Positions 6,301 to 54,320 of a DNA stretch of 55,109 bases are shown here, in pieces. This stretch comes from Dimorphilus gyrociliatus (taxonomy: Eukaryota; Animalia; Annelida): positions 25,515 through 80,623 of the forward strand of contig CAJFCJ010000074.1 of NCBI GenBank assembly GCA_904063045.1, read 5' to 3'. Under the pieces are notes generated by a model. That model worked only from the letters and a program-made list of their open reading frames with translations. It was not told where the DNA came from and ran no database searches. Positions within the stretch are counted from its first letter, which is position 1; each line of letters opens with the position of its first letter. Position numbers and translations under genes: made by a program.

Positions 6301-9169
6301 CGACGGAATTGATGATTGTAAACTGGGTGAAGACGAGGAGAATTGCTCACAGCCGCAATACTTTTACTGTTCACCAACCGAGAGGATAATGTATCAATTC
6401 GTTTGCAATCATTATTATGACTGTTCCAACAAAATTGACGAGGAGTTTTGTGGTAAATAAAGAAAAAACAACGAAAATACTAATTATCAATAACAAACAT
6501 TTTTGATCTAACCGCTTTGACAGAATGGCAAACTTGTCCTACTTTTAGGTCTATATTCTATCAACGTGATAAACAAATACTCATTATTTTTCTTTAGATG
6601 TCAGAATAAGCAATGTATAGAATTATATAATTTATGTAATTCACAAATCAACTGCGCTGATCAAACTGATGAAATTTGTGATAAAAAACTATTTCATTCA
6701 AGCGACGAATCAAATTCGAGCTTTTGCCCAAAAAATTTCTTTTATTGCAATGGAGACAAATGTATAGAAAAGTCTCGCGTTTGCGATCTGCACTTGGACT
6801 GCACGGATTTTAACGATGAAATTCCATCAATGTGTAGCACTATAATCACTAGAGCAAAGTGTGACTCACTAATTGCAAATAGAACAAACACATGCCGTCT
6901 GGAAGAGTACTTTGATCATTTTAGCTTTTCTTCACCAATCTCGTATTTTGCAAATTTTTGGTCAGAGTGCTCAAACAATTCATGTCCAAATGGAACTTAT
7001 ACATGTAAAGATGATAATTATTGTATACCGATTATGAATGTATGCGACGGAGTTGCTCATTGTCGAAAAGGAGATGACGAATATCAGTGTGGTTTGTCTT
7101 ATATTAGTTTTAACAAAGCAATTGATAAAACATTAATAAACACGTAGAAAACTTTCGACCTTCTGGTTTTTTTGCCTGTAAAGATAGCACTTCAATTTTG
7201 AATTTAAATCAAATATGCAATGGAATAATTGATTGTTTAGACGGAAGTGATGAAATTAATTGCAATTCAACAATGATAAAATGTGATAGAAATTTAAAAT
7301 CAAGACAATATTTCTGTGAAAATAAAGAGATTTCAATTGAAAATAATGACAAATATATTAAAAATCAATTTTATAATGATTTAATATTCAAAAATTCAAA
7401 ATTATTACCAAATAATGATGATGATGAAATAATATTTTTAAATATCTATAAAGTTCAATTCAATGATTTGAATAATTTCAAAATTATCATATCAAATTCA
7501 ATGCCAAATTTAATTTCATTAGCTGTTCAAAATTTAATGCTTGACTTTTTCAAACATTTCGAAATGGATAAACCAATGAAACTTTTACAAAATATTTCAA
7601 TTGTTAAAGTTACATTAGCAAAATCATTTCAATATTTCAATTTCTCAATTTTTCCTTTGTTAACAAAGTTGAGTATTGTTAGATCATTTCCGTTAGAATC
7701 TCTTAAAAATGGACATCTAGGTGCTAATTCAAAATTGAAATTCCTTGAGATTATCAATTGTAGATTATCGTCAATTGACAAACTACTGTTTCACAATATA
7801 AATGTAATGAATAGTCTAAGAATTTTATTTCTCAATGGAACAAAATTTAATAAATCATCAAATTTTTTACCATTTAAACATCTGTTGACAGTTGATCACG
7901 TGTCATCTGAGTACTCTTCAATTTGTTGCATTGTCAATTATTTTAATAAGGCAATTAAATCTTGTCGACCAAACCATAAGAAATTACTAAAAGCTTGCTC
8001 CAATTTATTAGTTTCGAAAAGAATTAAATTTCTATTTATAGCAGTGACAATTCTTTGCTTTCTGGGTAATTTAATTAGTTTTCTAATCAAGTTAAACAAT
8101 TTGACGAGATTGTCAATGATATTCGAATTGTTTCTATCACTTGGAGATTTTTGCATCATTTTACCATTAATGATCCTCTTATCCAAACACTACAAATACG
8201 AAGGGGTTTTTATGTATTTTTCAGTTCACTGGCTTTCAACTATAGAATGTCTGTTAATTTATCCATTTATAATACTCTCTTTGGCCTTGTCGTTGTCAAA
8301 TCAACTTGTAGTGACCATAGAACGTTTTATAGCTATAAAATATCCATTCAAAAAAACTTTTTCCTCAATATTTTCAATTGTTGTAACTGAACTTTCCATC
8401 ATTGTTACATCAACGATATGTTTTATATTGCTCTTGTTATTTAAGAATGTATATATAGTAAGAGAAAAATATAGATCTTATTAAACTCTATCTTTTCCAG
8501 ACTTATCAATTTTCTACTGATATCTGCTTTAGTATTTTCTACACAAATCAACAAATACTTGAATGGTCCTTGTTATTTCTACTCTTTGGATTTATCCTAT
8601 TCAGTTTATGCGTAGCTATGAATCTATTCTCTCTGCTTACAATTTTTCTTTTAAGCAAAGCAGCAGCCGTATCCAAAAATAAAAAAACAATGACCTACGC
8701 CAAAAGTTCAATGGTTATAGCATTTATTACCAATACAATTAGTTGGCCACCAGTGTTTATCATAGGCCTTTTGTCCTCATTTATTGATTTCGAGATAAAT
8801 TACGAAATGTATTTATGGATATTTATTGTATTTGTGCCTATGAATAGTATTTTAACTCCTTATTTTCGTATAATAAGCCAGTTGAGAACTAGAAAACAAT
8901 TGAAAAGGTATGTATACTTACTTACCAGCTGTTTTAGAAGGACAAAAATTTTCCATATGAAGATGGAGCAAAAAGATAATTATCTTATTTCTTTTTCCAT
9001 AAAAAAACAGACAGAAAAAACTGTTGCTCCAACAAAAGTCAATAGGAGACAAATGTATTGTTTCTCCTTTTCTTTCTTTCTCTCGCTCTCTCTATCTCGC
9101 CTTAAAAACCTACATTTTCCTTTAATACAGATGTCAGCTTTTACAAGACATCCTTCAAATATTACTTAA
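3309..9169 (+). CDS. Multidomain rhodopsin-class GPCR A: signal peptide, SRCR-like, CTL-like, about 6 LDLa, LRR, 7TM (GRL101/LGR type C-like); 3' end approximate
   Basis: LDLa motifs VCDGIDDCKLGEDEENC, VCDLHLDCTDFNDE, VCDGVAHCRKGDDEYQC, ICNGIIDCLDGSDEINC. LRR region in ORF 7198-8484, hinge ICC...C...CSNLL, TM1 GNLISF, TM3 TIERFIAIKYPF, TM6 TISWPPVFII, TM7 VPMNSILTPY. GT-AG junctions checked in phase at several exons (3603/3667, 6066/6191, 7091/7148). Confidence 0.87.
3760..3889 (+). repeat. Dispersed short repeat copy (degenerate CCCTAA/CTAG-rich core ending TGGACGTTTTTCTCTCGAC), in an intron of GPCR A
   Basis: The same terminal motif occurs at 24458-24478(+), 32383-32404(-), 52949-52970(+) and partly at 41706-41720(-). 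Confidence 0.55.
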
Positions 9170-9219
9170 TTTCAAAAAATCATAGTAACAAACTGACATT
9201 ATTTCAACGTATCAAACAT

Positions 9220-9459
9220 TTGAAAAGCATTGTTGACCTAAGAATCTTTTCATATTGTTTATTTACAGCCATATTTCAAAGCAATGAAATATCTGTTTGT
9301 TTAACTGAAGCTATTAGTTTCAAAAATATTTTTGTTGAAAAGAGAAAATACTATTTTTTAATGTCAAATGTAAAATGTTACTCTGATCTTCAAAGTCAAA
9401 TTGATATTCAAAATGCTGCTCTATTAATAGATGATTGTATGAACACTCTATTGAAATAA
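9220..9459 (+). other. Possible first-exon remnant of a further receptor paralog (signal-like start, SRCR-like YFLMSNVKC)
   Basis: Hydrophobic N-terminus; weak similarity to ORFs 12782-13189 (KRFYCLFNNV) and 20633-20902 (KRQMYFFNVRC). Confidence 0.3.
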
Positions 9460-10000
9460 ATTATTAAAATGTCATTTGAATATTTTCAAATTTTTACTAT
9501 ATGGAGAAAAAATTGGCAAAATTCCAAACTTGATAGAAAAAAGTGAGCCTAGCTAATTAACTATTGATTAGTTGCTTTTAACATAAATTCGATTCAACTC
9601 TTGCAACATGAATAGCTAATTTTAGAATGTCGAACAAAATTTCCATTATTTCATTTTTTTACCCTAACCCTAATCCTAAGTTACTTTAGCCTTTAACATT
9701 CAGGAAATGCTCTGACCACGAACTCTTTTACTTTTTCTCCAACATTACCAATTCATTGAAATTAATCAAACTTTATACTTAAAAATTGTTGGCACCAAAG
9801 TAGTATTTTATCACTATGCACCAATAACTTTAATTGCCAGTTTATAGTATAATTTTATAATGCAACCTATTAAAATCCATAATTATAAAATATAAATGTT
9901 ACAAGGTTCTCTTGAACAACGAAACTAAACGATAAACAATTTTTTTTTGCAAGCAAAACTGGGAAACAATAAGGATGATTTTGATAGACCCTCTTTAATA

Positions 10001-11180
10001 AAGTAAATGACAGGAGTATTGGAACACCTGGAAGTTTTATTGGCCAAATATTAAAAATCTTTTTCATTATGAAAAAAGATTATTTTTTATTCAGTGTTCA
10101 ATAATAGGTTCAACTTCCAATTTTAGGGCTCCTTGCTGGCCAATCAAAGGCTCAACGTTGTTTTTTTAAAAGGCCTTTTTCGTTTTTCTTTCTATGTGAC
10201 TATGTGACAACCAGCATTTTCTTGCTGGAAGATGTACTTACTGCCCATTTTTTACCTCAGTCTCTTCTATGACAGAAAGAACATCTTCCACAATGAAGGA
10301 GCTCTACTTTTCCACATTCAGTTTTCTCCTTATCACTATTGTTAGTCCACATCCTAAAGTCATCAGGTCCACTTAGGGAAAACCTAGCCTCAACTGTAAA
10401 AATAACCATAGGCCAGTCTAGACTAATAATTTTGTGACAGTATTCTTTTCTCTGTTTACAATCTTTAGAGGTGAGATCAGTTCTTTGTCTGACTCTTTTG
10501 TATTTGACGTTTTGTCTTTTCAGCTCCTTCTGAATTGTTCTGATGCTTATATCTACTTCTAGTTCCTTTAATATCTTTGCTGCTGTCACTCTTTGCTTCT
10601 TATCTTTCAGTTTCTTCACAATCTGTTTCATCCTGGTTATCTCTCTGTCAGAAAGCTATTGTCTTGCTCTGGCTGCTTATACTTCAAGATGTTACTAACT
10701 GATGATGGTGCCATTCCTAAAACTCTTGCTGTTGCCCTTAATTTCCCTATTTGCCTATATTTTTTGATTACAAGATCCCTAATATCTTTACCCCAAACCA
10801 TAATTAAAAAAATACAAATAAATTATATACAGTAATTTTTAATATTCAATAACTAATTAACTCAACTTAATACAGGAAAAAAGTTGAAAAAAATTTTGTT
10901 TGAGATGTCTATTTGAATGCCAAACCAGATATCAATGCAATGTTCCAATAAACATGTCACACAGCCAAAGATAATTACTAAAAACTTTTGCTAAAAATAT
11001 TCACAAAATATTACCATTTTCTTAATTTTTTTCAATATTATGTTATTATGTCAATTTAACTCTTCTTCTATATGAATTTAGAAAAAAAATAATAGTTTGC
11101 AGTAAATGAACAAATTTAACCATTAATTAAAAATTGGCCTGTGAAAATTTATGGTGTCCACATATTCTTGTCATTTACTT
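10001..11180 (-). mobile_element. Internally deleted Tc1/mariner element with both TIRs and TA target duplication
   Basis: TIRs AAGTAAATGACAGGAGTATTGGAACACC (10001) and its imperfect reverse complement ending 11180, flanked by TA at 9999-10000 and 11181-11182. Transposase remnant starts MVWGKDIRD at 10801(-) and includes VIFTVEARFSLSGPD; frameshifts and deletions present. Confidence 0.88.
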
Positions 11181-11399
11181 TATATTACTGATTTTTTTGG
11201 GGAGATAAAAGGAATGTCTGAGAACTTATTGATACATCCTTGGATGAATATTATTAATCCTATCCTATTTTTACTTAAATTTCAAATTGTAGCTTTAAGT
11301 GACTGAGAGAGTTATATGCATAAGGATACTTAAGACAACATACTGCTCACTTGAATGTTACCGTATCTGGTGGGTGACTTAAAGTCACCTTCCTAAAGT

Positions 11400-12720
11400 T
11401 ACCCCCCAACTGTTTCTTATCTCTTCTCAAACTATATGGAAATTTGTTGCTACTTAAAAACTATTAATGAAAAATTGATAGTTTGCCAACCAGAAAAGAG
11501 TATATACAATGGCTGTATATTTCTGTTTGGATCATTAACGTTAAGAAATTGGGCAACCGCTATTATGATATTGGCATTTATGATAAAAGTCCATTCAATT
11601 CTTTTGCGAATATTTAACTTGAAACGCTATGACCATATTTTTAACTATTGTGTGTCATTTGGAGATGGTCTTTTTGCAATTTCACTATCAATATTACTAA
11701 TAATGGATTATAAATATGGAAGAAATTTCCTTACATTTTCATATATGTGGAAATCTAGTTTTAAATGTCAACTAGTTAGAGTATTAATCACATTTTCTTT
11801 GATTTTTACACATTTGAATAACATGTTCACAACTATTCGACTCTTTGATGCAAAGTACATTTTACTGAAAGAGTGTTGTTTATTTAAATTGCAACATATC
11901 GTCTTAATTGAATTGACTATATTTCTTATATCGCTTTCCTCTGCCATTTTGTCGTTATATTTTAGTCAAAATGTGAGAAAAAAGTAACATTGTTTGTTTT
12001 CTTTGAAGGAGGAAAGGGGACGAGATTGATTGCAAATAGTTGAATACTGGATAAAATATCCCCAACTTATTAACTTACAACCTTCATTTTGGCCTAATTA
12101 ATGAAATTATTTTCCCCAACCGGAAATGAGCCCCCCTCAGGGGATATTTTGTCCAACACCCCATCTCCTCACCAAATAGTTCACCTAATTGTTTTATTGT
12201 TCCTTGTAGGATAATCAATATTCAAAATCTGTGCTGTGTTTCAATATTTTTTACACTGGTGAAGAAACAACAGAATGGATTATATCCGCTGTGTTTTTTG
12301 GCTTCATAGGCTTTCTACCCTGTTTCTTTATGGATTTAATCAGTTTCTTAAAAATTTGCAAGTGTTTTATGTTAAGAGAAAGAATTCATACATCAATTCT
12401 TTTAAGAGTTTTTGTTTCAAATGTTTGCTGGTTGCCATTGATATTTATTAGTTAGCTGTTTTTATGTTGATTTCTACTGTTTTTACATCAACACTTCTAT
12501 CTTTCTTTCAGCAACGTTTTCTCCATTTTTAAATTTGACCATTTCCCACAAAGTTAATGTTATTGTTTTCTTAACAATACTACCAGCAAATTCAATATTC
12601 AATGAAGCTTTTTACATTGTAGAATATATTAAAATGAAATTAAAGGAAAAGAGGTTTTCTTTGTTTTTCATTCAGTTTATTTCAATCATTTTAATATTAT
12701 ATACTCATTTTTTCTCCTAA
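11400..12720 (+). pseudogene. GPCR paralog D: hinge + 7TM only, ectodomain absent (truncated gene or pseudogene)
   Basis: MEICC...CQPEKSIYNGC hinge and TM1-4 in 11436-11973, TM5-6 in 12211-12452 (VSNVCWLPLIF), TM7 ILPANSIFNEAFY near 12580. Homology stops abruptly near 11400 with an in-frame TAA at 11394-11396. Confidence 0.72.
12048..12155. mobile_element. MITE-like insertion in an intron of paralog D
   Basis: TGGATAAAATATCCCC (12048-12063) and GGGGATATTTTGTCCA (12140-12155) form a 15/16 inverted repeat; the intron is longer and GC-richer than its neighbours. Confidence 0.5.
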
Positions 12721-12781
12721 TTTGTAAATAAATAACAAGGCATTTCAAATCGAAGAGAATGCAAGAGACACTCATTCTTAA

Positions 12782-13189
12782 ATGTTGATTTTAAAGAATG
12801 TTTGTTGTTGTTTTTCTTACTCAGAGAGATTTTCTTTTTTTCCAACAGATTTTAGTTTTTTCAATGACAGTTTCAACAATAATCTAGTTTTAAAAGAACA
12901 TAGTCAACATATGGAATTATTTGATTTTAACAAACATATTACAAAAGTTAATGATTTATTGGAGTTTACGCATTCATTATTTCAAGCGATAGACATTTGC
13001 TGCCAAAACACTCTCTGCCTTGATCAAAGTATCAAATCCGATTGCATTTTCTATGATCAAAAAAGATTTTATTGTCTCTTTAACAACGTAACTGAGTTTT
13101 CTGAAAAACAATTTAAAAATGATATTAAAGAAGCTTCAATGATTATTAGAAAATTCCTACAAAAATTCTTTATTGTCAATAAACTGTAG
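12782..13189 (+). other. Uncharacterised Cys-containing ORF, possibly the N-terminal remnant of another receptor paralog
   Basis: 135-codon ORF directly after paralog D, mirroring ORF 9220 after gene A; weak motif sharing only. Confidence 0.3.
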
Positions 13190-13595
13190 TTTAAACTTTT
13201 ACGGTTTTTCTAATTTAGCAAAAGTTTAGGCCCACAGCTGTATTAAGATTGCAATAAAACCTGTAAACATAATACAGTCCCGCCAAAAAATCTATAGCAG
13301 GGTTGTTCTTGAAATGAAAAACGTGAAATATTTAAGTAACAGGACTTGCTTAATTAAATTTTTTTGTTTAGAATGAAGGATAAGACATTTATAGAACCAA
13401 ATTTAAAGATAAAATTCATTTAAAAATTTTTTTTACTTTCCAGTAATTTTTATTCAAAAAATTTTGCATTATTTTATTTTTCTCTCTTATTATTTCAGAA
13501 ATAGGACAAGCTCGTCCAAAAAAGGCCAGTGCACTGCCCTTCCTTAGCCAATTTTCCTTAGATTTTTTTAAATAAGTAAATAGAGAGGTTGTATA

Positions 13596-14257
13596 AAGTA
13601 AACAACAGGTATGTTGGCACACCTCGAATTTTGATAGGTGAAATATTAAAAATCAATTTCATTATGAGGAAAGATTATTATTTAAATTTTCTCAGTCTTA
13701 AATTATAGATTAAACTTGGAATTTTATATAAATTTCTTTCAAAAAGCATTTAGCTAAGCTTTTACATATATTTTTTTTATAAAAATTACTATTGTTTTAT
13801 GATTTTTTTTCTTATTTGGCCAATTGACATGATTATTGGCACATAAACTTTTGAGTTAAAATTTTCTTTATCTTTGTATGTGCTGACCCTCTCTTTCTAA
13901 GCATTTGCTTATCCTATGGCCCATTCCATCATACAAATTTGGAAGCAACTCTGGATTCTTCTTTATAAGCTCATAGCAGCACTTCTTAATTCTTTCCCAT
14001 AATTCACCCTCTGACTCGAACTGTGGCCCATCATAGACCATTGTTTTTGTTAGGTGCAACATGTTCTTGATTGGGCACTGGTCAGGGCTCCTTGCTGGCC
14101 AATCAATGGTCTTGATTTCATTTTTCTTAAAGGCCCTTTCTGCTGCTCTTGCTGTATGACAGCCAGCATTACCTTTCTGGAAGATGTACTTCCTCCCCAT
14201 TTTTGTCTCAATCTCAAGACATGGCAAGAAGAGTTGACATAAATGAAGAAATTTCAT
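13596..14257 (-). mobile_element. Tc1 3' fragment (catalytic C-terminus plus one TIR)
   Basis: FQKGNAGCHTA...WPARSPDQCPIKNMLHL is a decayed DD34E region; TIR TA|AAGTAAACAACAGGTATGTTGGCACACC at 13596. Confidence 0.85.
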
Positions 14258-39627: not shown

Positions 39628-40250
39628 GACAGCAGAAAGTTTTGACAGTTATGACTTGAAGTTTGCTCAACCACCTGATGTTCTTTTCAAAAATGAAGAA
39701 GAAGTTTCTGGCTGGTTTAAGCAATTTGTCAATTTTATGGTTGTATGTGTTGCCTAGCAATCACAAACTGAAGATATAATACCTTGATGAAAATAATTCT
39801 GATAAAAAATATCAATTTTTGATATAAATTGTTATTCAACAAGTTTGTTTTCTGCTCTTATCTTTTTAAATGCATCTTATAAAAAATACCGTTTAATGTG
39901 AGCTTTGTGACTTGACTGATTACATAAAAGAACTCTAGATATATTAGGTCTAATCGCAGTATTAAATACACTCTGCTTTAATTTTACAACCGCCAAAGTA
40001 ATACTACTGATACTTTCCAACAATATTACTTAATCCGTAAACTTTCATTTGGTTTTGTAAGATGTAACAATTTTTGTAACATTCAATTCAGCCATTGAAT
40101 GTGAGAAGTTGGAACTGATCCAAAAGTCAACAATAGTCAAGTTTGACCTTTTAGTGCGCTTTAGCAGGCTTCTAAATTATTGTTCATAAGTAGTTAAAGT
40201 AAGACTAATGTGCTTCAATAATTATTACTAAATTTATTAAACTGAATATA

Positions 40251-41630
40251 AAGTCAAGGCCTAAAATACCCAGACACTGTAAATTTTGATAGGCCAATTT
40301 TGAAAACACCCCAAAAATGTTATCTTTGTTTTAAATTGGTTTTTTTGTCTAAATTTCCATGAAGAAAGAGTTATATTTATGTTATACTGAAAAAAATTAT
40401 AGAAAATTATCATATTTGTGAAAATTATTAGCAAAATTTTTTTTTTAATTTTCACTGTTTTTTTCTTTATTTGGCCATAAGTCCAAATTAACCATACATC
40501 CAGATTACATCCGGTTTTGCATTTCAATAGATGTCTTAAACTGAAATTTTTTTCAACAAAATTAATTTTCCAAGTTAAGTTGATTACTTATTATCTATTT
40601 TACCTACTTTAGTTAATTTTTATATCATTTATTTCATTATAGCATGGGGAAAAGAGGTTAGGAACCCGGTAATCCAGAAATATGAAGAATTGGGGAAAGT
40701 AAGGGAAACTGCAAGGGCTTTGGGAATGGCATCATCTACAGTGAGCAACATTTTAAGGTATAAGCCACCCAAACAAGAGAATAGGGGTTGTCCAAAGAGA
40801 CTCACAGAAAGAGATGTAGCAAGAATGAATAGGATTGTGAAGAGACTTAAAAGAAACAAGGAAAGGGTGACAGCTAGGAAGATTTTAAATGAATTAGAGG
40901 TAGATGTAGGCCTGAAGACAATTCAGAGAGAGTTGAAATTGCAAAATCTTTGTTATAAATGAATTCAACAAAGAGTTGATCTCACAAGCAATGACTGCAA
41001 AACAGTATTGTTTCAAAACTATTTGAGATAACTTAGATTGGTCAAGAGTCATATTTATGGATGAGGCAAGGTTTTCATTGAGTGGTCCTGACAACTTCAG
41101 GACCTGGACAAATGACAGGGAAAAAGAGATGAGATTAACAAAAAATATGGGCAGAGGTGGAGTAATGGTTTGGGGACTAATAACCTCGGATGGTGTGTTT
41201 GAGGTATGGAGAGTAAGCACAAGATTGAATGCCCAAAACTATGCTACTTTTGTGGTCAAAGATGTTCTCACAGTTATAGAAGAAATCTCAGATAAAATGG
41301 GGAGAGATTACATCTTCCAGCAGGATAATGCAGGGTGCCATACTGCAAGAGTTCCAAGCAGGGCATTCAGGATGAATGGCATACATCCAATCGATTGGCC
41401 AGCTAAGAGCCCTGATCTTAGCCCAATAGAAAATGTGTGGCACCTGACCAAAAATTTGGTTTATGATGGGGCACAATTCACATCAGAAGATGAACTATGG
41501 GAGAAAATTAAAAAATGCTCCTACAAACTTATAAACAAAAATCCTGACTTGCTACCAAATCTGTACACTGGAATGGGGGCGGGGTAGGATCAGTACATGC
41601 ATTGAGAAAGAAGGTCATCAAATACAGAAG
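40251..41630 (+). mobile_element. Near-full-length inactive Tc1 (DD34E), 3' TIR missing
   Basis: 5' TIR TA|AAGTCAAGG...CAGACACTGTAAATTTTG; start appears mutated (ATA GCA TGG GGA AAA), TGA at 40960, frameshifts; MDEARFSLSGPD, FQQDNAGCH-(34 aa)-SPIENVW. Confidence 0.9.
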
Positions 41631-41899
41631 TAGTAAAAATATTAGTCCCCAAACCATTGTCTGGAATAATGTGACTCACAGCCAAATAAGAAAAAAACGG
41701 GTACAGGAGAAAACGTCCACTATAGAACTTCAAAGTAAGATATAAGATATTTGATAGATGGAGTTTTTAGAGCAATTTGACAGGAAAAAATGAATAATAA
41801 GAATTACAAATATTTAAATATTAATATATTGATTAAGTAAAAAGAAGCATTATAACAAGAATGATTGACAACAGTGTAACAACATTAAAGAATAAAAGT

Positions 41900-42230: not shown

Positions 42231-43395
42231 ATAGGGGTGAAACCGTACCCATTTTGGGTGAAACCGTACCCATAAAAATATTAGGTTTTTTTAATGTTAT
42301 TAATACTAAAGAAAAGTATATACAATACTAAGAAAATGATAATAGATTAAGACATAACTTTGAAAGATAAAAGAATGGAAAAAGTGAAAAAAAAGAATAT
42401 TATGGAGTATAAATATCAGATGTTTGAACTAATAATTCATCTGCCAAAAGCCCTCCAAGTCTATAATTTTCTCAAATTTCAAATATTTTTCTTTCTATCT
42501 CAATATACTGCTTTTTTTGGAACTTGATAATCTTCTTCTCAGACATAAGCTTTTCACAGATAATAGCTAAATCAGCTTCTTTCTTCAGTTCATCAAGCAA
42601 CCAATAAAATGATCCTTTAGATGGTACTTTATTATTCCATCCTCCCACACTGTTATTAGTCCTTATGGATAATCCATATATAGACCAATTCTCTGATTTC
42701 CATAAAGAGTTCATAATCCAAGTTGCTTCAAAATATTCCAACAAGTCTGCAAATTTTTCTTTTTCTGTAAGTTGAGATTTCAATCTGAAATATGTTGGAG
42801 CAATGATATGAGCAGGCAGAAAAGGTAAAGCCATCAGCTTTCTCATGTCTCTCCAGTCCTCCCCTTTCTCCATATACTTTCCAGAGTATCCAAGAGACTT
42901 GAAGGATCATAATTGTAAAGACAAACCATATAGGTAAAATTAAATGTTTTACCTGTATTTTCCTATATATTGCTTGTATAAAATGGAATATACATCCATG
43001 AATTTGTGATTCTGGATATATTTTGGATACAGCTCTCCACAGACCCTTCTCAAAATCAATTGTTATCTTCTCAGGCTGTAACATACCAGTCATGTTTCTG
43101 ACACTCTGAAGAACGAAACATTCATCTGAAAGTAGTTAAATCTAGAATGATAATCTTTGCCCAAATATAATTATCAAAAAAAGCTTGACTTTCAAAGTAA
43201 ATTCTTTCCAAAGTGAAAGTTAACTTCAGTTTCTTCATTTTTAAAATGGCTGTCAGTTTATATTTTAACAGTCTTTTTATTTTTGTAGCTTCCATTATTA
43301 TAATTCTAAATAATAAAATTAAAAAAATATAATATTTTTATGGGTACGGTTTCACTCAGGTACGGTTTCACTCGGGTACGGTTTCACCCGCTACC
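42231..43395 (-). mobile_element. Internally deleted MULE (Mutator-like) element with TIRs, 9-11 bp TSD and an intron-containing transposase remnant
   Basis: GGGACACCTGA at 42220-42230 and 43396-43406; inverted termini built of GGGTGAAACCGTACCC units; IDFEKG...HGCIFHF, LMALPFLP, IRTNNSVGGWNN; 55-bp GT-AG intron 42898-42952 joins RKIQ|SLGYSGKY. Confidence 0.92.
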
Positions 43396-43647
43396 GGGAC
43401 ACCTGATATTAACCAATCATTCAATTGGTATGTTATGAGCAATTTCTTTAATAATCTGAAAATAGTCTACAGTATATGGTTATAAATTAACCATTTAACC
43501 ATTGTACATGAAATATAGTAAAAGAGTTCAGACTGTCAACAGCTGTCGAAATGATTAGAAATCAAGAAAATAAAAATGGTAATTTTAAATATTTAGCTAA
43601 AAGTATTTATTTTTAAACTACTCAACTATTCAACAGAAACTTCTGAA

Positions 43648-46600
43648 ATGGAGGAAGTCAAAAAAATTTTCACCCAGTTTGAAAGATTTGAAATGGTTTT
43701 TTTTCTTTTTTATATTTACAGTTCGATGTATTGTGATCGTAGGAAAACCAAAATGTTTTATACTAGACTGTTAACATACGAAGTCAGCTGCGCACAATGC
43801 TATTTATAACCGCTCATTTAAAATAGTTTTAGGTTACGTCTATGCTTTTCTAAACAAGGTTTTCTAAGTGCATACTATTATTTTTAAATTATAGAAAATA
43901 AATTCTAAAAGTTGTCATCTCTTTTTTCAGAATGAAAATTCAAAATGTACTCAACTAATTGTTTTAAAATGTAAGCATTATTTCTTTAACTAACGCCTCT
44001 TTTTAAGTTTTTATCTTTTAACATAGATAAGAATGAAAACAGGAAGTTTTTTAATATTGAAAAATTATCTAATCTATTTGATACTATTGAAGAATGGATT
44101 ATTGATACAAAAAGTGAATTCGAATTAAAAATTCGAAATTTAAAAAGAAACTCAACTGAGATTGATGGTTTTATCTTCCTTCTTCTTGTATCAGAAGAAG
44201 AAAATAGATCTGATTTTAAAATTGAGAATAGTGTATTAGGATCGTTTGACAATTTAAAATGCATGATTAATAAGAATAGTTCAGAAGAATTTCGTAATAA
44301 ACCGAAATTATTTATCTTCCCGAAATATTCAAAAGGTTAGTGAATGCTAAAAAATAACTGTCAATTTAACATTCTGAAAAAACTTTTTCAGTATCATCAT
44401 CTCTATCAGCCCAAACAGATTGCAGTAGTCAGAAAGACATTGCACAATCATTAGAAACTTGTTCAATTCAATCATTTTCCGATTTGAACATTAACTATTT
44501 TGATGGTATTTACTTTTCAAAATGGAGGTATTTTATCTTTTTAGAAATATTGAATTTGTATATTTTACAGAGAAATGGATGAACAATCAAGCGAGAAGAT
44601 TGTTTGACGAATTTAATATTTTCCATAAAGAGAATATATGCATTCATGAAAATGGAAATAATACAACAACAACTTTCTACTCAACTAGCGAAAATCTATT
44701 TAAAGATTACGAAAGTACAAATACACTGGTAGCAGAAGGAAAAAATGTTTTTCTCTCTTTTGATTACTTTAAAAGTCTGAATGAAGAAAACACAAACACA
44801 GAATGTGACGATGTTAAACTAAGCAAAGGTATAGTTTTTTATTCATTTGGTCACGTGATAGATTTCACTTTATTAAAATTTTTAGCTGTAAAAGTTTTTT
44901 ATGATAATGTCAGAAAATCAGATTGTTACTGCTATTTAAAAGCAAGGGAAATATCTCTCCTATTTGCTGAAAGTATATGTTATTTCATTCAAATATTCAA
45001 GTCTATCACTAATCGTATTCCCTTTTCCCTCAATCAAAGTCTCTTCCATTGCTGGACAATTACAACGGAAGTCTTTGGAACAAACGTCAGCTTATTTATT
45101 TAAAAAGAAAGCGGAAATAGAACGTTCAAGTTGTTCAAAATGCAAAAGTTTAATTGATGCATTCAAAACAAAGATAAATAATACATTTATGTTCTGGAAT
45201 GAAGACAGTATTAGAATTCTTCTCTGGTTGGATGACAGTAATAGACCCGGCAATGGGAATTTTAAAACCAACTACGACTTTGGATTCATTCTAAACGGAA
45301 TCCAACAAGATACTTTTGCAGAAACTTTACTAATTGTTACATTGAAACAAACCGGAAGTTGTAATTTTCAAAAAAGACTAACAAATCAAATTGGTTGGAT
45401 GGTTGTACCAGCATTCAATTACAGTTCGGACCATATTGAATTATTGAATAATGGCTTACTAATTGAGCATCAATCACTTTATGTTCCTCTCTTCCAAACA
45501 ACAGGCACCAATTATTATTTTCCAATCAAAGATGAAGAAAACGTCGACCAAGAATGGACACTTCTCCTATGCATTCAAGCAGAGATGATTGGACAAGAAC
45601 TTATCGGTTGTCATTTATCAATTAGACAGGAAATGAATAGCATTAATTCATTGAAAAATCTCATTTATTTGAGAGATTTTAAATTGAATTTAATGAAAAG
45701 TTCTTCATTTCAAATTCAAATTAATAAAGATTTGAATTTTAAAATCTCTTCTTTAGATTATCTATTGAAAGGAATTATCTTCAATCAACAATTCTATATT
45801 GATAAGACAAAAGAATTACATATATTCATTGAGAATAACAACAAGAATTTGATTTTGGATGATAATTTTCCAATATTGCAAAGGTTGAATAATGATATTA
45901 ATTCATTTTCAACAGCCTATTTTACTGGTGAAAAATTAATTTTAAATGCTGAAAATTCATTGGTTGTCCTACCGGAAGGATGTTTTCAAAAATCAACTGT
46001 TGTTTCAATACAAGAGAATTATTCATTCAAAAATAACAAAAATTGTACTATACTTCAAAGCTCTGTCGATTGTAAACCGGATGGAGAATTTTTTGAGCAA
46101 AAAACTGCAAAATTATTGTTTAATCCAATTTTTAAATCTAAAGATATTGACGTAGGGGAATTTAAATATTTAAAATCTGATTGGATTGTTGGCAATTTGA
46201 GGCATTTTTCCCGCCACGAGCTTTGTAACAATAGTAAGGATGGAGTAAGATTCAATCTTTATTCTTCAATTGAAAAATTAGATAACAAAACTTTGAAATT
46301 TTTTGTTTATTTTACTGTGAAAAGCAAAGTAAGTGATATCAATTTTTGTTGAATTTCAACTATCTTATATTTTCTGTTGTCGCCATTTTTTTCATTTTAT
46401 TCCCCAGAATAACACAAATGTTGAAATGGAACAGAACGAAATAACACTTCCATATAAAAATAATGCGGTTCCAGGTCAGAATGGCTTAAAGCTTACTGTC
46501 AAAGGGAATAATTTTGAAGAAACCTCTTCTAAATCCTTTAACACCTTATTTCAAAGTTTTGATAGAGGTTTTTATTAAAACAATGATAAAGAATACAAAT

Positions 46601-49167
46601 ATTATAAGCCTATATCATACACATTATTGATTTTATTCAGGTAACGACTTTCCTTTTGTTGTCTTCATCCAACATGAAGAAATTGACAAAGGAGAAATAA
46701 TCATTGAAAGTGGAAACTTAAAAAATAATGAGTTTGTTTCCTACGATTCTATAAATTGGAGATTTTCGAATATTTTCATTGACCAATCAAAGAACACTTC
46801 TCCAAAAGTGTGCATACTAAAATATTATTCAGAATATGGTGAGATTTAATAAAAAATTGTGATTGCGTTATTAAATTCTCTACTGTCCATCTTCCTAACT
46901 TACAACTCTTTTTTTGTTTTTGTTTTTAGAAACTCAACAACTCCAACACGAGGAAAATTTTGATTGTTCGAAGAAAATTAATGAAATATTAAAATGTTTG
47001 AATGATGAAGTAAGAACGCAGATTTGATTTTTAAAAATTAACAATAATAACCTTTACAGAAATCTTATAAAAATAATGGAAGTAGGGTTTTCTTCCTTTC
47101 TACAGCAAACACTATTGGAAGAGATAGTTCAAATTTGATCAATTTTTTCAACTTTTTGAATTTTCATACTCATACTTTGAATATCAAAGAAAATCTTTCA
47201 AGCCAAATTAAACATATTTTAAAGGATGATACAATTTCTAAATATGGTTTAATATTTTTTATACAATTTACCGGAAATGAAAAAATTGATAAATGTCAGG
47301 AAATTATTGATCAACTAAATATTGAAGAAGTTAGCGACCAACCTAAAATGTTCTTTTTTCAATTTTATACTAAAGGTGAAGGTTAAATTTTTTAAAAATG
47401 TCTTTTTTTTTTATTTCGAGTACTTTTAGTTTTTCCTAAAAATGAAGAAGATTTAAATGAAAAATTTAAGAATGTTTCACTCTCTTCCAAAACACCTGCA
47501 CAAGCATCAAATGATGACGATGATAGTTTGTTCGTGAAAGCTGACAAAACAACTAGCAATAATGTGCCTTCGTTACATAACATGAAAAATACTTTTGTTA
47601 GAATTGAAAACATTTATGGTAAGTATTGTCCAACTTGAAACTAAACTTAGTAATACCCAATTTTTAAGGATTATGTTATGAATGCATATGAAAACAATAA
47701 TTACAGATGACGTTGAAAATCTTGAAAAATGGGGAAGTTGTTTTATTAGAGGATTAATATTATCAATCAAATACTGCAACTACTGTAAACCTTTGAATAA
47801 GATCTTAGAATATACTCAGTTGATTGTTGAATCAAAACTGGAAAATATTTTAAGTGACAAAGAATTCGAATTAAAAACTAACGATTTCAAAAATTACTAT
47901 TTCCTACCAATTTCTGTTATCAAGTCTGAAAATTCCTTATTTAAGGAATTTAAAAAATTTGGTATAGTTCATTTGAAAATTTAAATTTTTAAAATATAAT
48001 TATTGAAATATATTCATTTTTTTTTAAAAGATAAATCACCTCGTATTACTTTCGAGTTGCTGGAGAGAAAATTTAGTAATGATAATGAAGTTTTAGATGG
48101 AAAGGTTTTTCTAACATAACTCAGTAACAAATTTAATTTCTTTCTTTTTTTCACTGTTTTCAGAAACTCTACTATGAATTTAAAACTGTAAAAGTTGTTA
48201 TTTTCAACATTTCAAAAAGTAACTTTCAATTGGATAGTTTAATTATCTAAAAAGACAAGAAAGCATTTTTTTTGTTGTTTTTTTTTATTATTTTGCAAAA
48301 CCTTTCAGAGAGACCAGGAAGTGAGCTGGACATTGACAACCTGTCAAATTTGTTCAATATTCTCGGGTACCAAGTACAAATTTGGCCTCAATGTAACAAG
48401 GATAATTTGATTCACAAAATAAAGTTGCTAAAAGAAGAAATGGAGAATTTTGACTGTTTAATATTCTTTGTGATGGCTCATGGTACTAAGTATGGATTCA
48501 AATGTAAATTTTCTTTTTAATAGAAGTTTTCTCAAATGTTTTTTATTAATAAGTTTTTTCTGTCATTTTAGTGTTGGACGACCATATTTTGGATTTTAAG
48601 GAATTTTTACGCCATTTTAATGACAAATGCCCAAATTTACTTTTAAAACCTAAACTTTTCTTTTTTAATTGTTGTAGAGGAAGTAAATAGTTTTAAATAA
48701 TTTATTTTTTCATTTTAAATTGAGCGATAACTAGGAATTTTTTCATTTTTAAAATAGCAAATTGGCTTTCCAATGAAACCAATAAATTCGACTTGAAAGA
48801 CACTGGGAGTGCATCAAATACACCTAAATCTGATGATGCAGAATGTATATCGGACTGCGGTAGGTTTTTTTCGACAATAGAAGGTATTGTTCTTTTTTTC
48901 TTTTGAGTTCTTAATTTATCATTTCTATTGTTACGTATTTTCTTGTCAGACCATGTCAGTTTACGTTTCCCAACTCTTGGAAGTATATTTATAAGATGCT
49001 TCATTATTTGTATGAGAGTCTATTCACATAGAGAATCCTTATCCTTAATTATGGAGAGAACCTACAGTCTACTGAAATGGAAAATTCATGAATACGAATT
49101 GGCATTGTACAGACAAGTTGCCGTCTCTGAACCTTCTTTGGAAACATTCTATTTTTTCAGCCTATAG
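43648..49167 (+). CDS. About 1390-aa multidomain caspase: pseudo-caspase, ZU5/UPA-like x2, pseudo-caspase, putatively active caspase
   Basis: Exons 43648-43695, 43931-43970, 44027-44335, 44392-44505, 44571-44972, 45040-46328, 46408-46567, 46641-46838, 46930-47009, 47060-47381, 47430-47618, 47707-47961, 48031-48104, 48164-48218, 48309-48503, 48572-48682, 48758-48883, 48950-49167. All are GT-AG and phase-compatible (4185 nt). Motifs NKPKLFIF, DQPKMFFFQ, WGSCFIRGL, FFVMAHG, KPKLFFFNCCRG, FSTIEDHVSLR..LGSIFI. The first exon is the least certain. Confidence 0.82.
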
Positions 49168-50600: not shown

Positions 50601-52642
50601 ATGAAGACAATTATTATTCAGATTCTACTGTTTTGTCTCTGTAAGTAAACTTTAATTGATTTATGTTTCTTATTATATATGAATTTCTATAATTTTAAAA
50701 TTAGAAATACTTAAATGTTTTCATCAAATAGCTATGATCTTTAATTATTGTTCTTTTTTTACAACATTTTACAGCTCTTCACTCTTCTGATGCTACACTT
50801 TCCCCATTTATCTGTCCCGTTGATGACCAACAAAGACCTATAAATGGTGTGTTTAAGGATAGCATTTTATGTGATACTTATCATCATTGCATAAATGGAA
50901 CTGCATTTCTAAGGAAATGTCCTCCTGGACAGCATTTTAAAATTATATTATCAGACTGTAGCTTTTCTGCCTGTGTTGATCCAGAATTATCAGATTGTTC
51001 AGAGACTCTAAAGGCATCACTACCTTCTCAAAAAATACGTCAATGTGAGACAGGTGAAAAAAATTCGAATAATGGTGAACAATGTTTTACTAGAGTAAGC
51101 GAATGTAGTTCTAATAGCAATGAAACAGTTCCAAGTTTTCTTGATTGTAGAATTTACTATCACTGTAGAAATGGTGTTTCCTGGCCACAGCAATGTCCTG
51201 ATGGCTATTATTATTCACTAAATGTTAATACTAGAGAATGTAAAGCTGAAATGTGTGTACCATTTGAGGTTGCCAGATGTCCATTGGCAGGTGGTTGGTC
51301 TGCATGGTCACAATGGGGTGACTGTGAACCAGAGTGTGGTGGTTTTGGAATTGAAACAAGAAGAAGGGAATGTAACAATCCTCCTCCTCAGAATGGAGGA
51401 GCTGAATGTCCTGGTGTTCCGATAGAAATAAGAGAATGCAAACCACCTGATTGTTCAGGGTCTACAAGCCCAGCATTTATGCTTTCTTTACAGGAAAATA
51501 CAAATGTAAATAACGGAAAAATTCCATGGAGTTCTATTGATGTGAATGATGACAATCTATATAATAGCAATAAAAAGGAAGTAGAGATTAAAAAGCCTGG
51601 AATGTATTTTTTCTCTATGACAGCAACAACTCTAACAAATACTTGGATGTCCCTAGAAAACACTGGAATTAACATAGGTCTGTCAAAAGAGATACATTTT
51701 AGTGACAGACTACTCACTGAAACTATTACAAGAAGTGGTTTATTTTCCTTAAGCAGCTTATTTAAACCAAGAGTTGTACACCTTCTAAATGATTCGAATT
51801 TGATAGGTAGCAATGATGGAAAGGATACGTCCTGGTTGGGTTTTAGATATGAAAGCAATAGTTTTGTTAGTGCTGCTCTTGGTGTAAAACAGAATTCTCC
51901 AGGTTTTTTATCTCTAAATACCATATTTTTAAATAGAGGTTTCACTATTTCAAACAATAACAAGATTTTTACATCTAGAGAAGCTGGTCTATATTATATT
52001 AATTTTGGAAGTGGAATTGAGGAAGGTAATAGTGAACACAACATCATTCTTTCTGTTGCACGCTATATGGCATCTTACACAAGAATATATTCTAAACCTC
52101 CTGGCATTGTAAATCGGCAATCAGCATATCCTTCATCCAGAGGATTTCTACAAGACTTACATGAAAATACTGTTTTACAATTGTCAGCAAGTAATCACGT
52201 GACAAGCTCTAAATTGGAGACATATCTTCTTGCATTTAAAATAAATAGCTCTTTTCCAGCTGTATTTCTAGTTAAAAGTCATCAGGGACAGAGTCAATGT
52301 CGACCAATATTTGGAATACAAGGATTACAGTTTGAAAATGTACTGGTGGATACGTTGAATTCATGGAATACTACAGGATATTTTACAGCCCCCATAGACG
52401 CAGCCTATTTTGTAGAAGTTAACTTGGTAGCTATAAGAACAACAGAACTTATTGTTGAAGTAAATGATCAAGTAGCTTTCAAGTTGAAACATGTAATGAA
52501 ACATTCAGGTGAAGCGGAATTATCAACCAGAACAGCTTTATTAAGGTTAAAGGAAGGAGATATTTGCAAAATAAAGTATAGAGGTTGTCTAGAACATATG
52601 ACTATGTCAAGTTCATTCACTATATTTGCTATTCAAAACTGA
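50601..52642 (+). CDS. Duplicate copy of secreted protein 1 (CBM14 x2, TSP1, C1q x3)
   Basis: 597-aa ORF translation identical to 32715-34508; exon 1 50601-50640, intron 50641-50774. Confidence 0.92.
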
Positions 52643-53359: not shown

Positions 53360-54320
53360 ACTGTTATCGGACCAGGTGAAACCATACAAATTAGGTATCT
53401 TATGGTCAAGAAATCAAGACTTTAATTAAAGAGAAGAACCAAGAAGGCTTATCTATGGGCAGATTTCAGAGATTTGTAATATTCCAAAATCTTCCATACA
53501 ATACATTATTAAACCAAATAAAACCAAGAGTGGAGGTGTTGGGAGACCAAAATCTCTGTCAATTAGAGATAAAACCCTCATGAAGAGGGGAATAAACAAA
53601 CTGAAGAAAGAGAAACAGAGGGTTACAAGTACAAAACTGGCATATGAATGCAACCTTACTGTTTCAAAAACAATGATTCAAAAAAAGCCCTTAAAGAAAT
53701 GGGAGGAAAACTTAAAAAAATCTCTCAGCACCCCCCTCTCAAGAAGAAAAATAGACTTCAGCAAGTGGAAATTTGTTGAGGGTGATTTGAAAATAAAATA
53801 AATTTGGACAATGTAATCATTTCTGATGAATGTAGATTCAGTTTTCATGGGCCAGATAGCTGCCAAACCTGGCAGTTTAATCCAGAAAGGGAAAACTTAA
53901 GATGTTAACAATCAATGGGTGGTGGAAGAGTCATGATCTGGGGATGTATGGGACCAGATGGTTTAGTGCTCATTTCTAGAATTGAAAAAAAATATACAAA
54001 GGGATGGTACCTGGCTCTCTTGAAAAAAGAGGTCATGTCATTCCTAAAAAAAGATATAGGAAGGGTTTCATTTTCCATCAGGACAATGCTCCTTGCCACA
54101 AGACCAAAATTGTCCTAAAATATTTCAAGACTGGAAAGTGCGCAGTCTTACCATGGCCAGTTTACTCCCTAGATCTCTCTCCCACAGAGGATGTATGGCA
54201 TTTGCTAAAGAATATGGTGTATGATCACAGTTTAGCAAAAAGGAAATTTTGTGGAAGTGTATCAAAGAAAAAGTTGAAATACTGAACAAAAGATGGAAAA
54301 AAGACTTATTTGCCCTTCAC
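53360..54320 (+). mobile_element. Duplicate of the degenerate Tc1 at about 31030-31990
   Basis: ORFs 53580-53801 and 54004-54285 identical to the left-arm copies. Confidence 0.85.

Follow-up and report, generated by a model that had tools for sequence, protein, structure and literature searches.

A Dimorphilus gyrociliatus gene predicted to join PIDD/FIIND-like ZU5/UPA domains and three caspase-type domains in a single chain

We analyzed a stretch of 55,109 nucleotides (nt) from the annelid Dimorphilus gyrociliatus (contig CAJFCJ010000074.1, positions 25,515 to 80,623 of the forward strand; hereafter the window, to which all coordinates refer unless another locus is named). The subject of this report is a plus-strand gene at 43551-49167. 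Its predicted product of 1386 amino acids (aa) begins with a caspase-like domain that lacks catalytic residues (domain 1), continues with a region of ZU5/UPA-type beta domains that holds a putative autoproteolysis site, and ends with a second catalytically deficient caspase-like domain (domain 2) and a catalytic-type caspase domain with both p20 and p10 parts (domain 3). The same order had been proposed in an earlier interpretation made from the letters alone (the sequence-only reading), and it is recovered here by hidden Markov model (HMM) and hhalign comparisons, structure searches and Pfam.

The sequence-only reading had described the gene as an 18-exon model at 43648-49167. Rebuilt from the sequence with a check of splice sites and frame on the plus strand, this model is intact: all introns are GT-AG, the phases are consistent, and a single terminal stop closes a frame of 1336 aa. 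Spliced RNA contigs with concordant junctions were recovered from the runs X1, X3, X4 and X5, and the gene is thus expressed. Run X1 yielded spliced contigs only, with zero mismatches to the window, and X3-X5, three runs of another study, are also spliced RNA. Contigs of the four runs confirm 16 of the 17 junctions of the earlier model but alter its structure in two places. The junction between its exons 5 and 6 is replaced by two junctions flanking an extra in-frame exon of 87 nt (44886-44972), which each of the four RNA assemblies contains. The last junction uses a later donor, with the penultimate exon ending at 48883 and not at 48859, a gain of eight residues. At the 5′ end, the contigs contain a further exon, which ends at 43578, is joined to 43637 and carries an in-frame ATG at 43551; the start codon of the earlier model (43648) is the second in-frame methionine. 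An in-frame stop read from the sequence 5′ of this ATG (43509-43511) excludes a longer N-terminus on this transcript.

The transcript-supported coding sequence runs from 43551 to 49167 (+) and comprises 20 exons, with every intron GT-AG: 43551-43578, 43637-43695, 43931-43970, 44027-44335, 44392-44505, 44571-44828 and 44886-44972 (exons 1-7); 45040-46328, 46408-46567, 46641-46838, 46930-47009, 47060-47375, 47430-47618 and 47707-47961 (exons 8-14); and 48031-48104, 48164-48218, 48309-48503, 48572-48682, 48758-48883 and 48950-49167 (exons 15-20). The region is AT-rich, with a GC content of about 29%, and the introns are short. A 16-nt tandem repeat (2.8 copies, 43343-43387) falls within or close to the 5′ untranslated region, and a short upstream ATG (43576-43578) opens another frame that terminates in the next exon. 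Several trivial explanations of the locus were dismissed. A pseudogene is ruled out by the intact frame, the expression and a conserved paralog; open reading frames (ORFs) on the minus strand are all of 100 aa or less, with nothing notable opposite the gene; and a tandem-repeat artefact was likewise rejected.

The C-terminal caspase domain (domain 3, 48164-49164, +) was delimited by Pfam and alignments. In a Pfam search with ten exon translations, the scope of all Pfam results on this protein reported below, Peptidase_C14 was matched at 48311-48502 (34.5 bits) and at 48574-48681 (22.3 bits), against a curated cut-off of 21.4, and the last exon gave a weak match to the same family (11.7 bits). 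Aligned with fish caspases and with its relatives, the domain presents the catalytic histidine in an AHG motif (His1228, codon 48479-48481) and the catalytic cysteine in an NCCRG motif (Cys1270, codon 48673-48675). Furthermore, Arg1172 (in KRPGSE) and Arg1320 (in VSLRF) fall in the same columns as the arginines of the RPGSE and IRHP motifs of fish caspases, which we take to be the S1-pocket arginines binding the P1 aspartate. For the equivalent domain of a close paralog, introduced below, caspase-2 is the nearest among solved structures (E 8.5e-15), and the paralog's caspase domain, used as a query, led to three fish caspases. By its profile, its catalytic dyad and its S1 arginines, domain 3 is a true caspase of the MEROPS C14A type and is predicted to be active.

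The two other caspase-type domains are of a different kind. Domain 1, preceded by only 37 residues, has its large-subunit (p20-like) part at 43955-44335 (+, residues ~38-145; assigned by HMM, hhalign and alignment A2), followed by a tail with a YST motif at 44571-44972 (+), a possible small-subunit-like part that includes the 87-nt exon. In domain 2, the large-subunit part occupies 47060-47375 (+, residues 875-979; hhalign, HMM, AlphaFold and Foldseek), and a small-subunit-like part with a GS-x-FI motif lies at 47707-47961 (+, hhalign). Neither domain has a Pfam match. A small caspase HMM scored domain 1 at 35.2 bits, where shuffled sequences reached at most 11.2, and domain 2 at 14.1 bits, where they reached at most 10.4 (0 of 1000 shuffles in each case). 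Comparison by hhalign with a caspase profile gave both domains a probability of 96.7%, each across 104 columns, with E-values of 4.5e-10 (domain 1) and 4.1e-10 (domain 2). An AlphaFold model of the domain 2 exon (predicted local distance difference test, pLDDT, 83) shows the beta-alpha-beta order of a caspase large subunit, and its best 50 Foldseek matches in the PDB are all caspase large subunits. In addition, comparison with the paralog revealed 39% identity over 28 residues between the small-subunit-like part of domain 2 and the corresponding motif of domain 3. In alignment A2, the histidine and cysteine columns are occupied by Glu and Tyr in domain 1, with PKYSK in place of QACRG, and by Thr and Tyr in domain 2, with FTG in place of HG and QFYTK in place of QACRG. 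Judged by profile and alignment, domains 1 and 2 are shown to be homologous to the caspase large subunit and to be without its catalytic His and Cys.

Between domains 1 and 2, most of the ZU5/UPA region is encoded by a single large exon (45040-46328). The AlphaFold model of its 429 residues (predicted template modelling score, pTM, 0.75) is all-beta except for the first 45 residues, which are disordered or helical. It contains a first beta domain of nine strands (45174-45536, +, exon residues ~45-165), possibly ZU5-like and without an HFS motif; a UPA-like beta sandwich (45549-45890, +, exon residues ~170-283); and a ZU5 domain (45894-46211, +, exon residues 285-390). Decisive for the ZU5/UPA assignment was a domain-wise VIA structure search of 48,161 PDB chains, which is independent of Foldseek and whose top ranks are held by ZU5, UPA and FIIND structures only. 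The matches fall into two stretches of the model. Ankyrin-B ZU5 (10.1, residues 287-403) and ZO-1 ZU5 (7.5, 285-389) cover the ZU5 domain, and ankyrin-R ZU5A-ZU5B (9.2, 209-399) extends from there into the preceding sandwich; rat NLRP1 FIIND chain B (8.3, 140-283), CARD8 321-445 (8.3, 170-282), UNC5b (7.4, 123-280) and the human NLRP1 UPA (6.9, 158-276) cover the UPA-like domain. On the modelled structure, a ZU5 fold is shown at 45894-46211. The beta-rich region that follows (46212-46838, +, residues 690-847, three exons) is read as a putative second UPA; its first 39 residues form three strands in the model, and the remainder is divided over exons. An attempt to place this second UPA through the annotated relatives P0001 and P0002 was rejected, as both annotations skip or read through exons there.

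The ZU5 domain ends in the tripeptide H687-F688-S689 (46203-46211, +), a putative autoproteolysis site at which a cut would be expected between F688 and S689. In the AlphaFold model, this tripeptide is the structural end of ZU5 and lies exactly at the boundary with the next domain. Alignment A1 comprises 15 sequences that are otherwise only 20-27% identical; the phenylalanine is present in 15 of 15, the next residue is Ser in nine and Cys in six, and His precedes the phenylalanine, at position -2, in nine of the 15. PIDD1 undergoes self-cleavage at two sites, between F445 and S446 and at S588, and the same chemistry has been described for NUP98, NLRP1 and CARD8 (PMC9162469). The nucleophile in this class of reactions is Ser, Cys or Thr, and in NLRP1 and CARD8 the His at -2 is replaced by Ser with processing kept (PMC9162469). 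Since the sequences are so divergent, an invariant Phe followed only by Ser or Cys suggests the pattern of a nucleophile and not of a structural residue, and the conservation at this site fits that role. With an HFS motif at the end of its ZU5, the module would stand closer to the autoprocessing ZU5-UPA of PIDD1, or to the FIIND of NLRP1 and CARD8, than to a passive scaffold; UNC5CL also belongs to the autoprocessing type.

The gene is not a singleton; it belongs to a lineage-restricted family in D. gyrociliatus. A HMMER search with the 429-aa exon against 1.84 billion representatives found only 13 proteins, the two best of which are from the same species: DgyrCDS14409 (P0001, 60% identical) and DgyrCDS14372 (P0002). 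The window gene's own annotated protein was not found in the protein collection, and a query with the 859-aa paralog returned itself alone. The locus of P0001 (L001) has the GC content of the window and shares interspersed repeats with it. Its gene, which spans about 8800-14120, is collinear with the window gene: domain 1, the ZU5/UPA module, the region after the HFS site, domain 2 with QFYTK kept, and an active-type domain 3 follow in the same order, with identities of 45-51% in the pseudo-caspases and 47% in the active domain. The annotation DgyrCDS14409 (L001:8800-16062) looks mistaken, as it starts within the large exon, omits the exons of pseudo-caspase 2 (L001 11802-12188 and 12523-12780) and ends in a transposon-like tail that overlaps an interspersed repeat matching window positions 10-14.7 kb at 79-86% identity.

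In P0002 (L002:10001-16778, 1962 aa), leucine-rich repeats (LRRs) lie upstream of the shared ZU5/UPA module, a caspase domain forms the C-terminal end, and the middle pseudo-caspase is absent. Where P0002 has LRRs, the window gene has an N-terminal pseudo-caspase and no recognizable sensor. In the annotation of P0002, an intron directly following the GFS site seems to have been included as coding sequence. More distant relatives come from Logan (SRR23372216, 28, 29, 31; loci L003-L008), on very AT-rich (24-26% GC), metazoan-like sequences that hold at least seven genes in which a module is followed by a caspase ORF. Two such genes lie on opposite strands of L005; a tandem pair of caspase-like ORFs is found at L007, which also has an adjoining Death+TIR gene. 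In total, a caspase-like ORF lies 3′ of the module on the same strand in nine of nine module-bearing genes (L001, L002 and L003-L008).

Remnants of transposons flank the gene at 40058-41643, 42472-43093 and 54004-54285, and the same repeat family occurs directly after the paralog at L001. Among them are pieces of a DDE_3 (Tc1/mariner-type) transposase (41057-41587 and 54004-54285), and a MULE transposase fragment lies at 42728-43093. Further upstream, an intron-less ORF of 709 aa (36547-38676) has a strong DUF4781 match (E 4.5e-64). Downstream, a 597-aa ORF (50849-52642) combines CBM_14 (chitin-binding), thrombospondin type 1 (TSP1) and C1q domains in a secreted protein, and it appears to be the third copy of a secreted family located at 28659-34756.

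The domains of the gene are individually known from several systems. The protein resembles PIDD1 in that a ZU5 closes with an HFS-type tripeptide and that ZU5/UPA-type domains occur more than once in succession, and the nearest solved structure to the family's caspase domain, caspase-2, is the enzyme of the PIDDosome. Unlike PIDD1, which has two HFS sites, it has one; it shows no LRR or Death match in Pfam and, as proposed here, would need no adaptor. Compared with the FIIND proteins NLRP1 and CARD8, the motif is HFS and not SFS, Pfam finds no FIIND, NACHT or LRR, and an extra beta domain and UPA-like domain lie upstream. Moreover, in NLRP1 and CARD8 the UPA is directly followed by a CARD that recruits caspase-1, whereas here caspase-type domains follow with no CARD match, and the effector is the caspase itself, preceded by a pseudo-caspase. 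The pairing of caspase folds that lack His and Cys with an active caspase recalls cFLIP-L and caspase-8, but in this case there are two pseudo-caspases, they share a polypeptide with the active-type domain, and no DED match was found. Pfam is negative for CARD, DED and death domains alike, in agreement with the sequence-only reading, which had seen none of them.

With other annelid and lophotrochozoan caspases of unusual prodomain, the gene shares a long N-terminal region outside the death fold. A survey of lophotrochozoan caspases that included D. gyrociliatus reported kinase, TIR, Z-binding, ROC, ankyrin, subtilase and PARP prodomains; ZU5, UPA and FIIND prodomains and tandem caspase folds are not among its architectures, and it found no PIDD in lophotrochozoans (10.1101/2023.12.11.571055). 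Passages by Aravind's group that our search returned describe TRADD-N fused to FIIND and UPA-ZU5 and mention no caspase fusion. Within the incomplete coverage of our literature search, no combination of ZU5 with Peptidase_C14 was found, and searches that paired FIIND or ZU5 with invertebrate caspases yielded nothing beyond domain surveys and the mammalian systems already known. The novelty that had been suspected from the sequence is upheld to that extent: no published description came to light, and the architecture is, as far as we have seen, a new and undescribed assembly of known parts.

We consider it probable that this one expressed gene encodes a 1386-aa cytosolic, autoprocessing caspase of FIIND/PIDD type that operates without adaptors. 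In the mechanism we propose, the ZU5 domain would cut its own chain between F688 and S689, in the manner of PIDD1 and of the FIIND of NLRP1 and CARD8, and the two halves would stay associated in a silent complex. Loss or displacement of the N-terminal half would free a fragment with the UPA, pseudo-caspase 2 and the caspase; such fragments would then cluster by way of the UPA, and the caspase would be activated by proximity. Pseudo-caspase 2 may serve as a built-in dimer partner, as cFLIP-L does for caspase-8. A single chain would thereby replace PIDD1-RAIDD-caspase-2 or CARD8-caspase-1, whose members are joined by death-fold domains.

Several results weigh against this interpretation or limit individual parts of it. 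In domain 3, the NCCRG motif has Asn where the usual QACRG has Gln. This Gln helps to bind the P1 aspartate, so the activity or specificity of the enzyme may differ. That the caspase domain of P0002 is dead, with Asp at the catalytic His position and QVHNQ in place of QACRG, means that catalysis is not universal in the family. The three caspase folds anticipated by the sequence-only reading stand for domain 3 by Pfam and for the large subunits of domains 1 and 2 by hhalign; the small-subunit-like parts are weak or not significant. That of domain 1 compares with p10 at an hhalign E of 0.12 and at noise level in the HMM, and that of domain 2, although it falls at the correct profile position, reaches an hhalign E of 1.2e-3 with a probability of 20% and is again at HMM noise level. 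For the domain 2 fragment, a VIA search by geometry alone ranked caspases among other Rossmann-like folds and did not discriminate between them.

The AlphaFold model of the large exon was built from the 15-sequence alignment only. Pfam found no ZU5 (PF00791), UPA or FIIND in the gene's protein, with ZU5 tested to E 1, and sub-threshold PF00791 matches occur in two of the 15 relatives (best E 5.8e-4). The family profile had no match among PDB sequences at E up to 10. Foldseek gave the large exon weak E-values, 0.03 at best (ZO-1 ZU5); with the whole 429-aa model as query (PDB, Swiss-Prot models, AFDB clusters and ESM Atlas), the matches are weak and mixed with unrelated beta-sandwich proteins, and a protein-feature atlas gave only weak leads to ZU5, FIIND and UNC5. 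Of the two ZU5/UPA modules that had been claimed from the sequence, one is clear in the structure search, as a ZU5 beside a UPA-like domain. For the first beta domain of the large exon, a ZU5 identity is supported solely by a Foldseek hit in AFDB that aligns residues 47-278 with the ZU5-UPA portion of a UNC5. The second UPA is no more than putative: just three strands are modelled after the HFS site, and hhalign found no sequence likeness between this region and the first UPA-like domain. Between the two putative ZU5-UPA halves, hhalign detected no internal-repeat similarity, and we regard the duplication as half secured.

An alternative reading of the same domains is that the ZU5/UPA region is an uncut binding scaffold in the style of ankyrin, UNC5 or ZO-1, in effect an unusually long prodomain through which the caspase docks to a partner, for instance the cytoskeleton or a membrane receptor, with HFS as a structural relic. 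It is attractive in that the best structural matches come from ankyrin-B, ankyrin-R and ZO-1, whose ZU5 domains do not cleave, that six of the 15 relatives lack the His at -2, and that annelid caspases with many unrelated long prodomains have been reported (10.1101/2023.12.11.571055). Nevertheless, the missing His counts for little when NLRP1 and CARD8 cleave without it (PMC9162469), and the invariant Phe, the restriction of its neighbor to Ser or Cys and the position of the site exactly at the domain boundary all run counter to a relic; we judge this explanation rather unlikely. A further step away from catalysis would be a non-enzymatic regulator or decoy whose three caspase folds, domain 3 included, are inactive and act as binding surfaces, for example by trapping or regulating caspases or their inhibitors. 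Two of the three domains are certainly dead, a relative has lost activity in its C-terminal domain as well, and the NCCRG substitution can be read in the same way. However, domain 3 keeps the His with its following Gly, the Cys and both S1 arginines, and so do the paralog and the distant relatives at L003 and L005. This retention argues for selection on catalysis and renders a pure decoy very improbable.

The integrity of the single chain must also be weighed. The sequence-only reading had envisaged a hard-wired platform and caspase in one chain; its architecture, in one transcribed and spliced frame, was recovered, but a stretch inside the 1289-nt exon, 45674-45886, is covered by no RNA contig in any of the four assemblies, a point against continuity. 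The contigs end at 45633-45673 and resume at 45887-45889, a few bases 5′ of the ZU5 start; a separate word index is concordant, and contig depth is 1.4-4.6 times greater 3′ of the gap than 5′ of it. These features would suit two transcription units, or long and short isoforms, with pseudo-caspase 1 and the large exon's first half in one unit, everything from ZU5 onward (~45887), including the two C-terminal caspase domains, in the other, and the single chain as a read-through artefact. Against such a split, the frame is open across the gap, which lies in the middle of the best-modelled structural domain; the missing stretch matches the paralog at ~60% protein identity with no frameshift and is aligned in all 15 relatives; the contig ends at the gap show no loose ends, poly(A) or joints in the four runs; and after 45887 no in-frame ATG occurs until residue 734. 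With a GC content of 20.7%, the stretch is, moreover, longer than any other very AT-rich coding segment in the gene, as would suit a library or assembly dropout. Because the frame, the conservation with the paralog, the alignment of relatives and the structural domain run straight through it, we read the gap as such a dropout and hold two units to be highly unlikely; a divergent allele or a second transcript start may be its cause instead.

If the probable reading of an adaptor-free, autoprocessing caspase is carried further, the protein may be imagined as a self-contained death machine working as a ‘tripwire’, an extension that we offer as doubtful. The chain would cut itself, the N-terminal half would silence it, and destruction of that half would free a clustering fragment that is active at once because pseudo-caspase 2 supplies a dimer partner from the same chain. 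Pseudo-caspase 1 could then be a bait for proteases of pathogen or host, or for caspase inhibitors. Should this hold, the gene and its LRR-bearing sister would indicate that animals wire FIIND/PIDD-type sensors directly to a caspase, with no death-fold adaptor in between.

To our knowledge, initiator caspases in all animals studied reach their platforms through death-fold domains (CARD, DED, DD, PYD), and the self-cleaving ZU5-UPA modules that we know of, those of PIDD1, NLRP1 and CARD8, all lie upstream of such adaptors. Pfam-based surveys miss caspase architectures of the present class because the ZU5/UPA module has no Pfam match, and the finding bears on the report that lophotrochozoans have no PIDD. 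It also raises the questions of whether clustering by a UPA is enough by itself to fire a caspase, whether a pseudo-caspase within the same chain can stand in for dimerization, and how the platforms evolved. A self-cleaving module with a caspase attached directly to it would amount to a PIDDosome or inflammasome in natural, minimal form.

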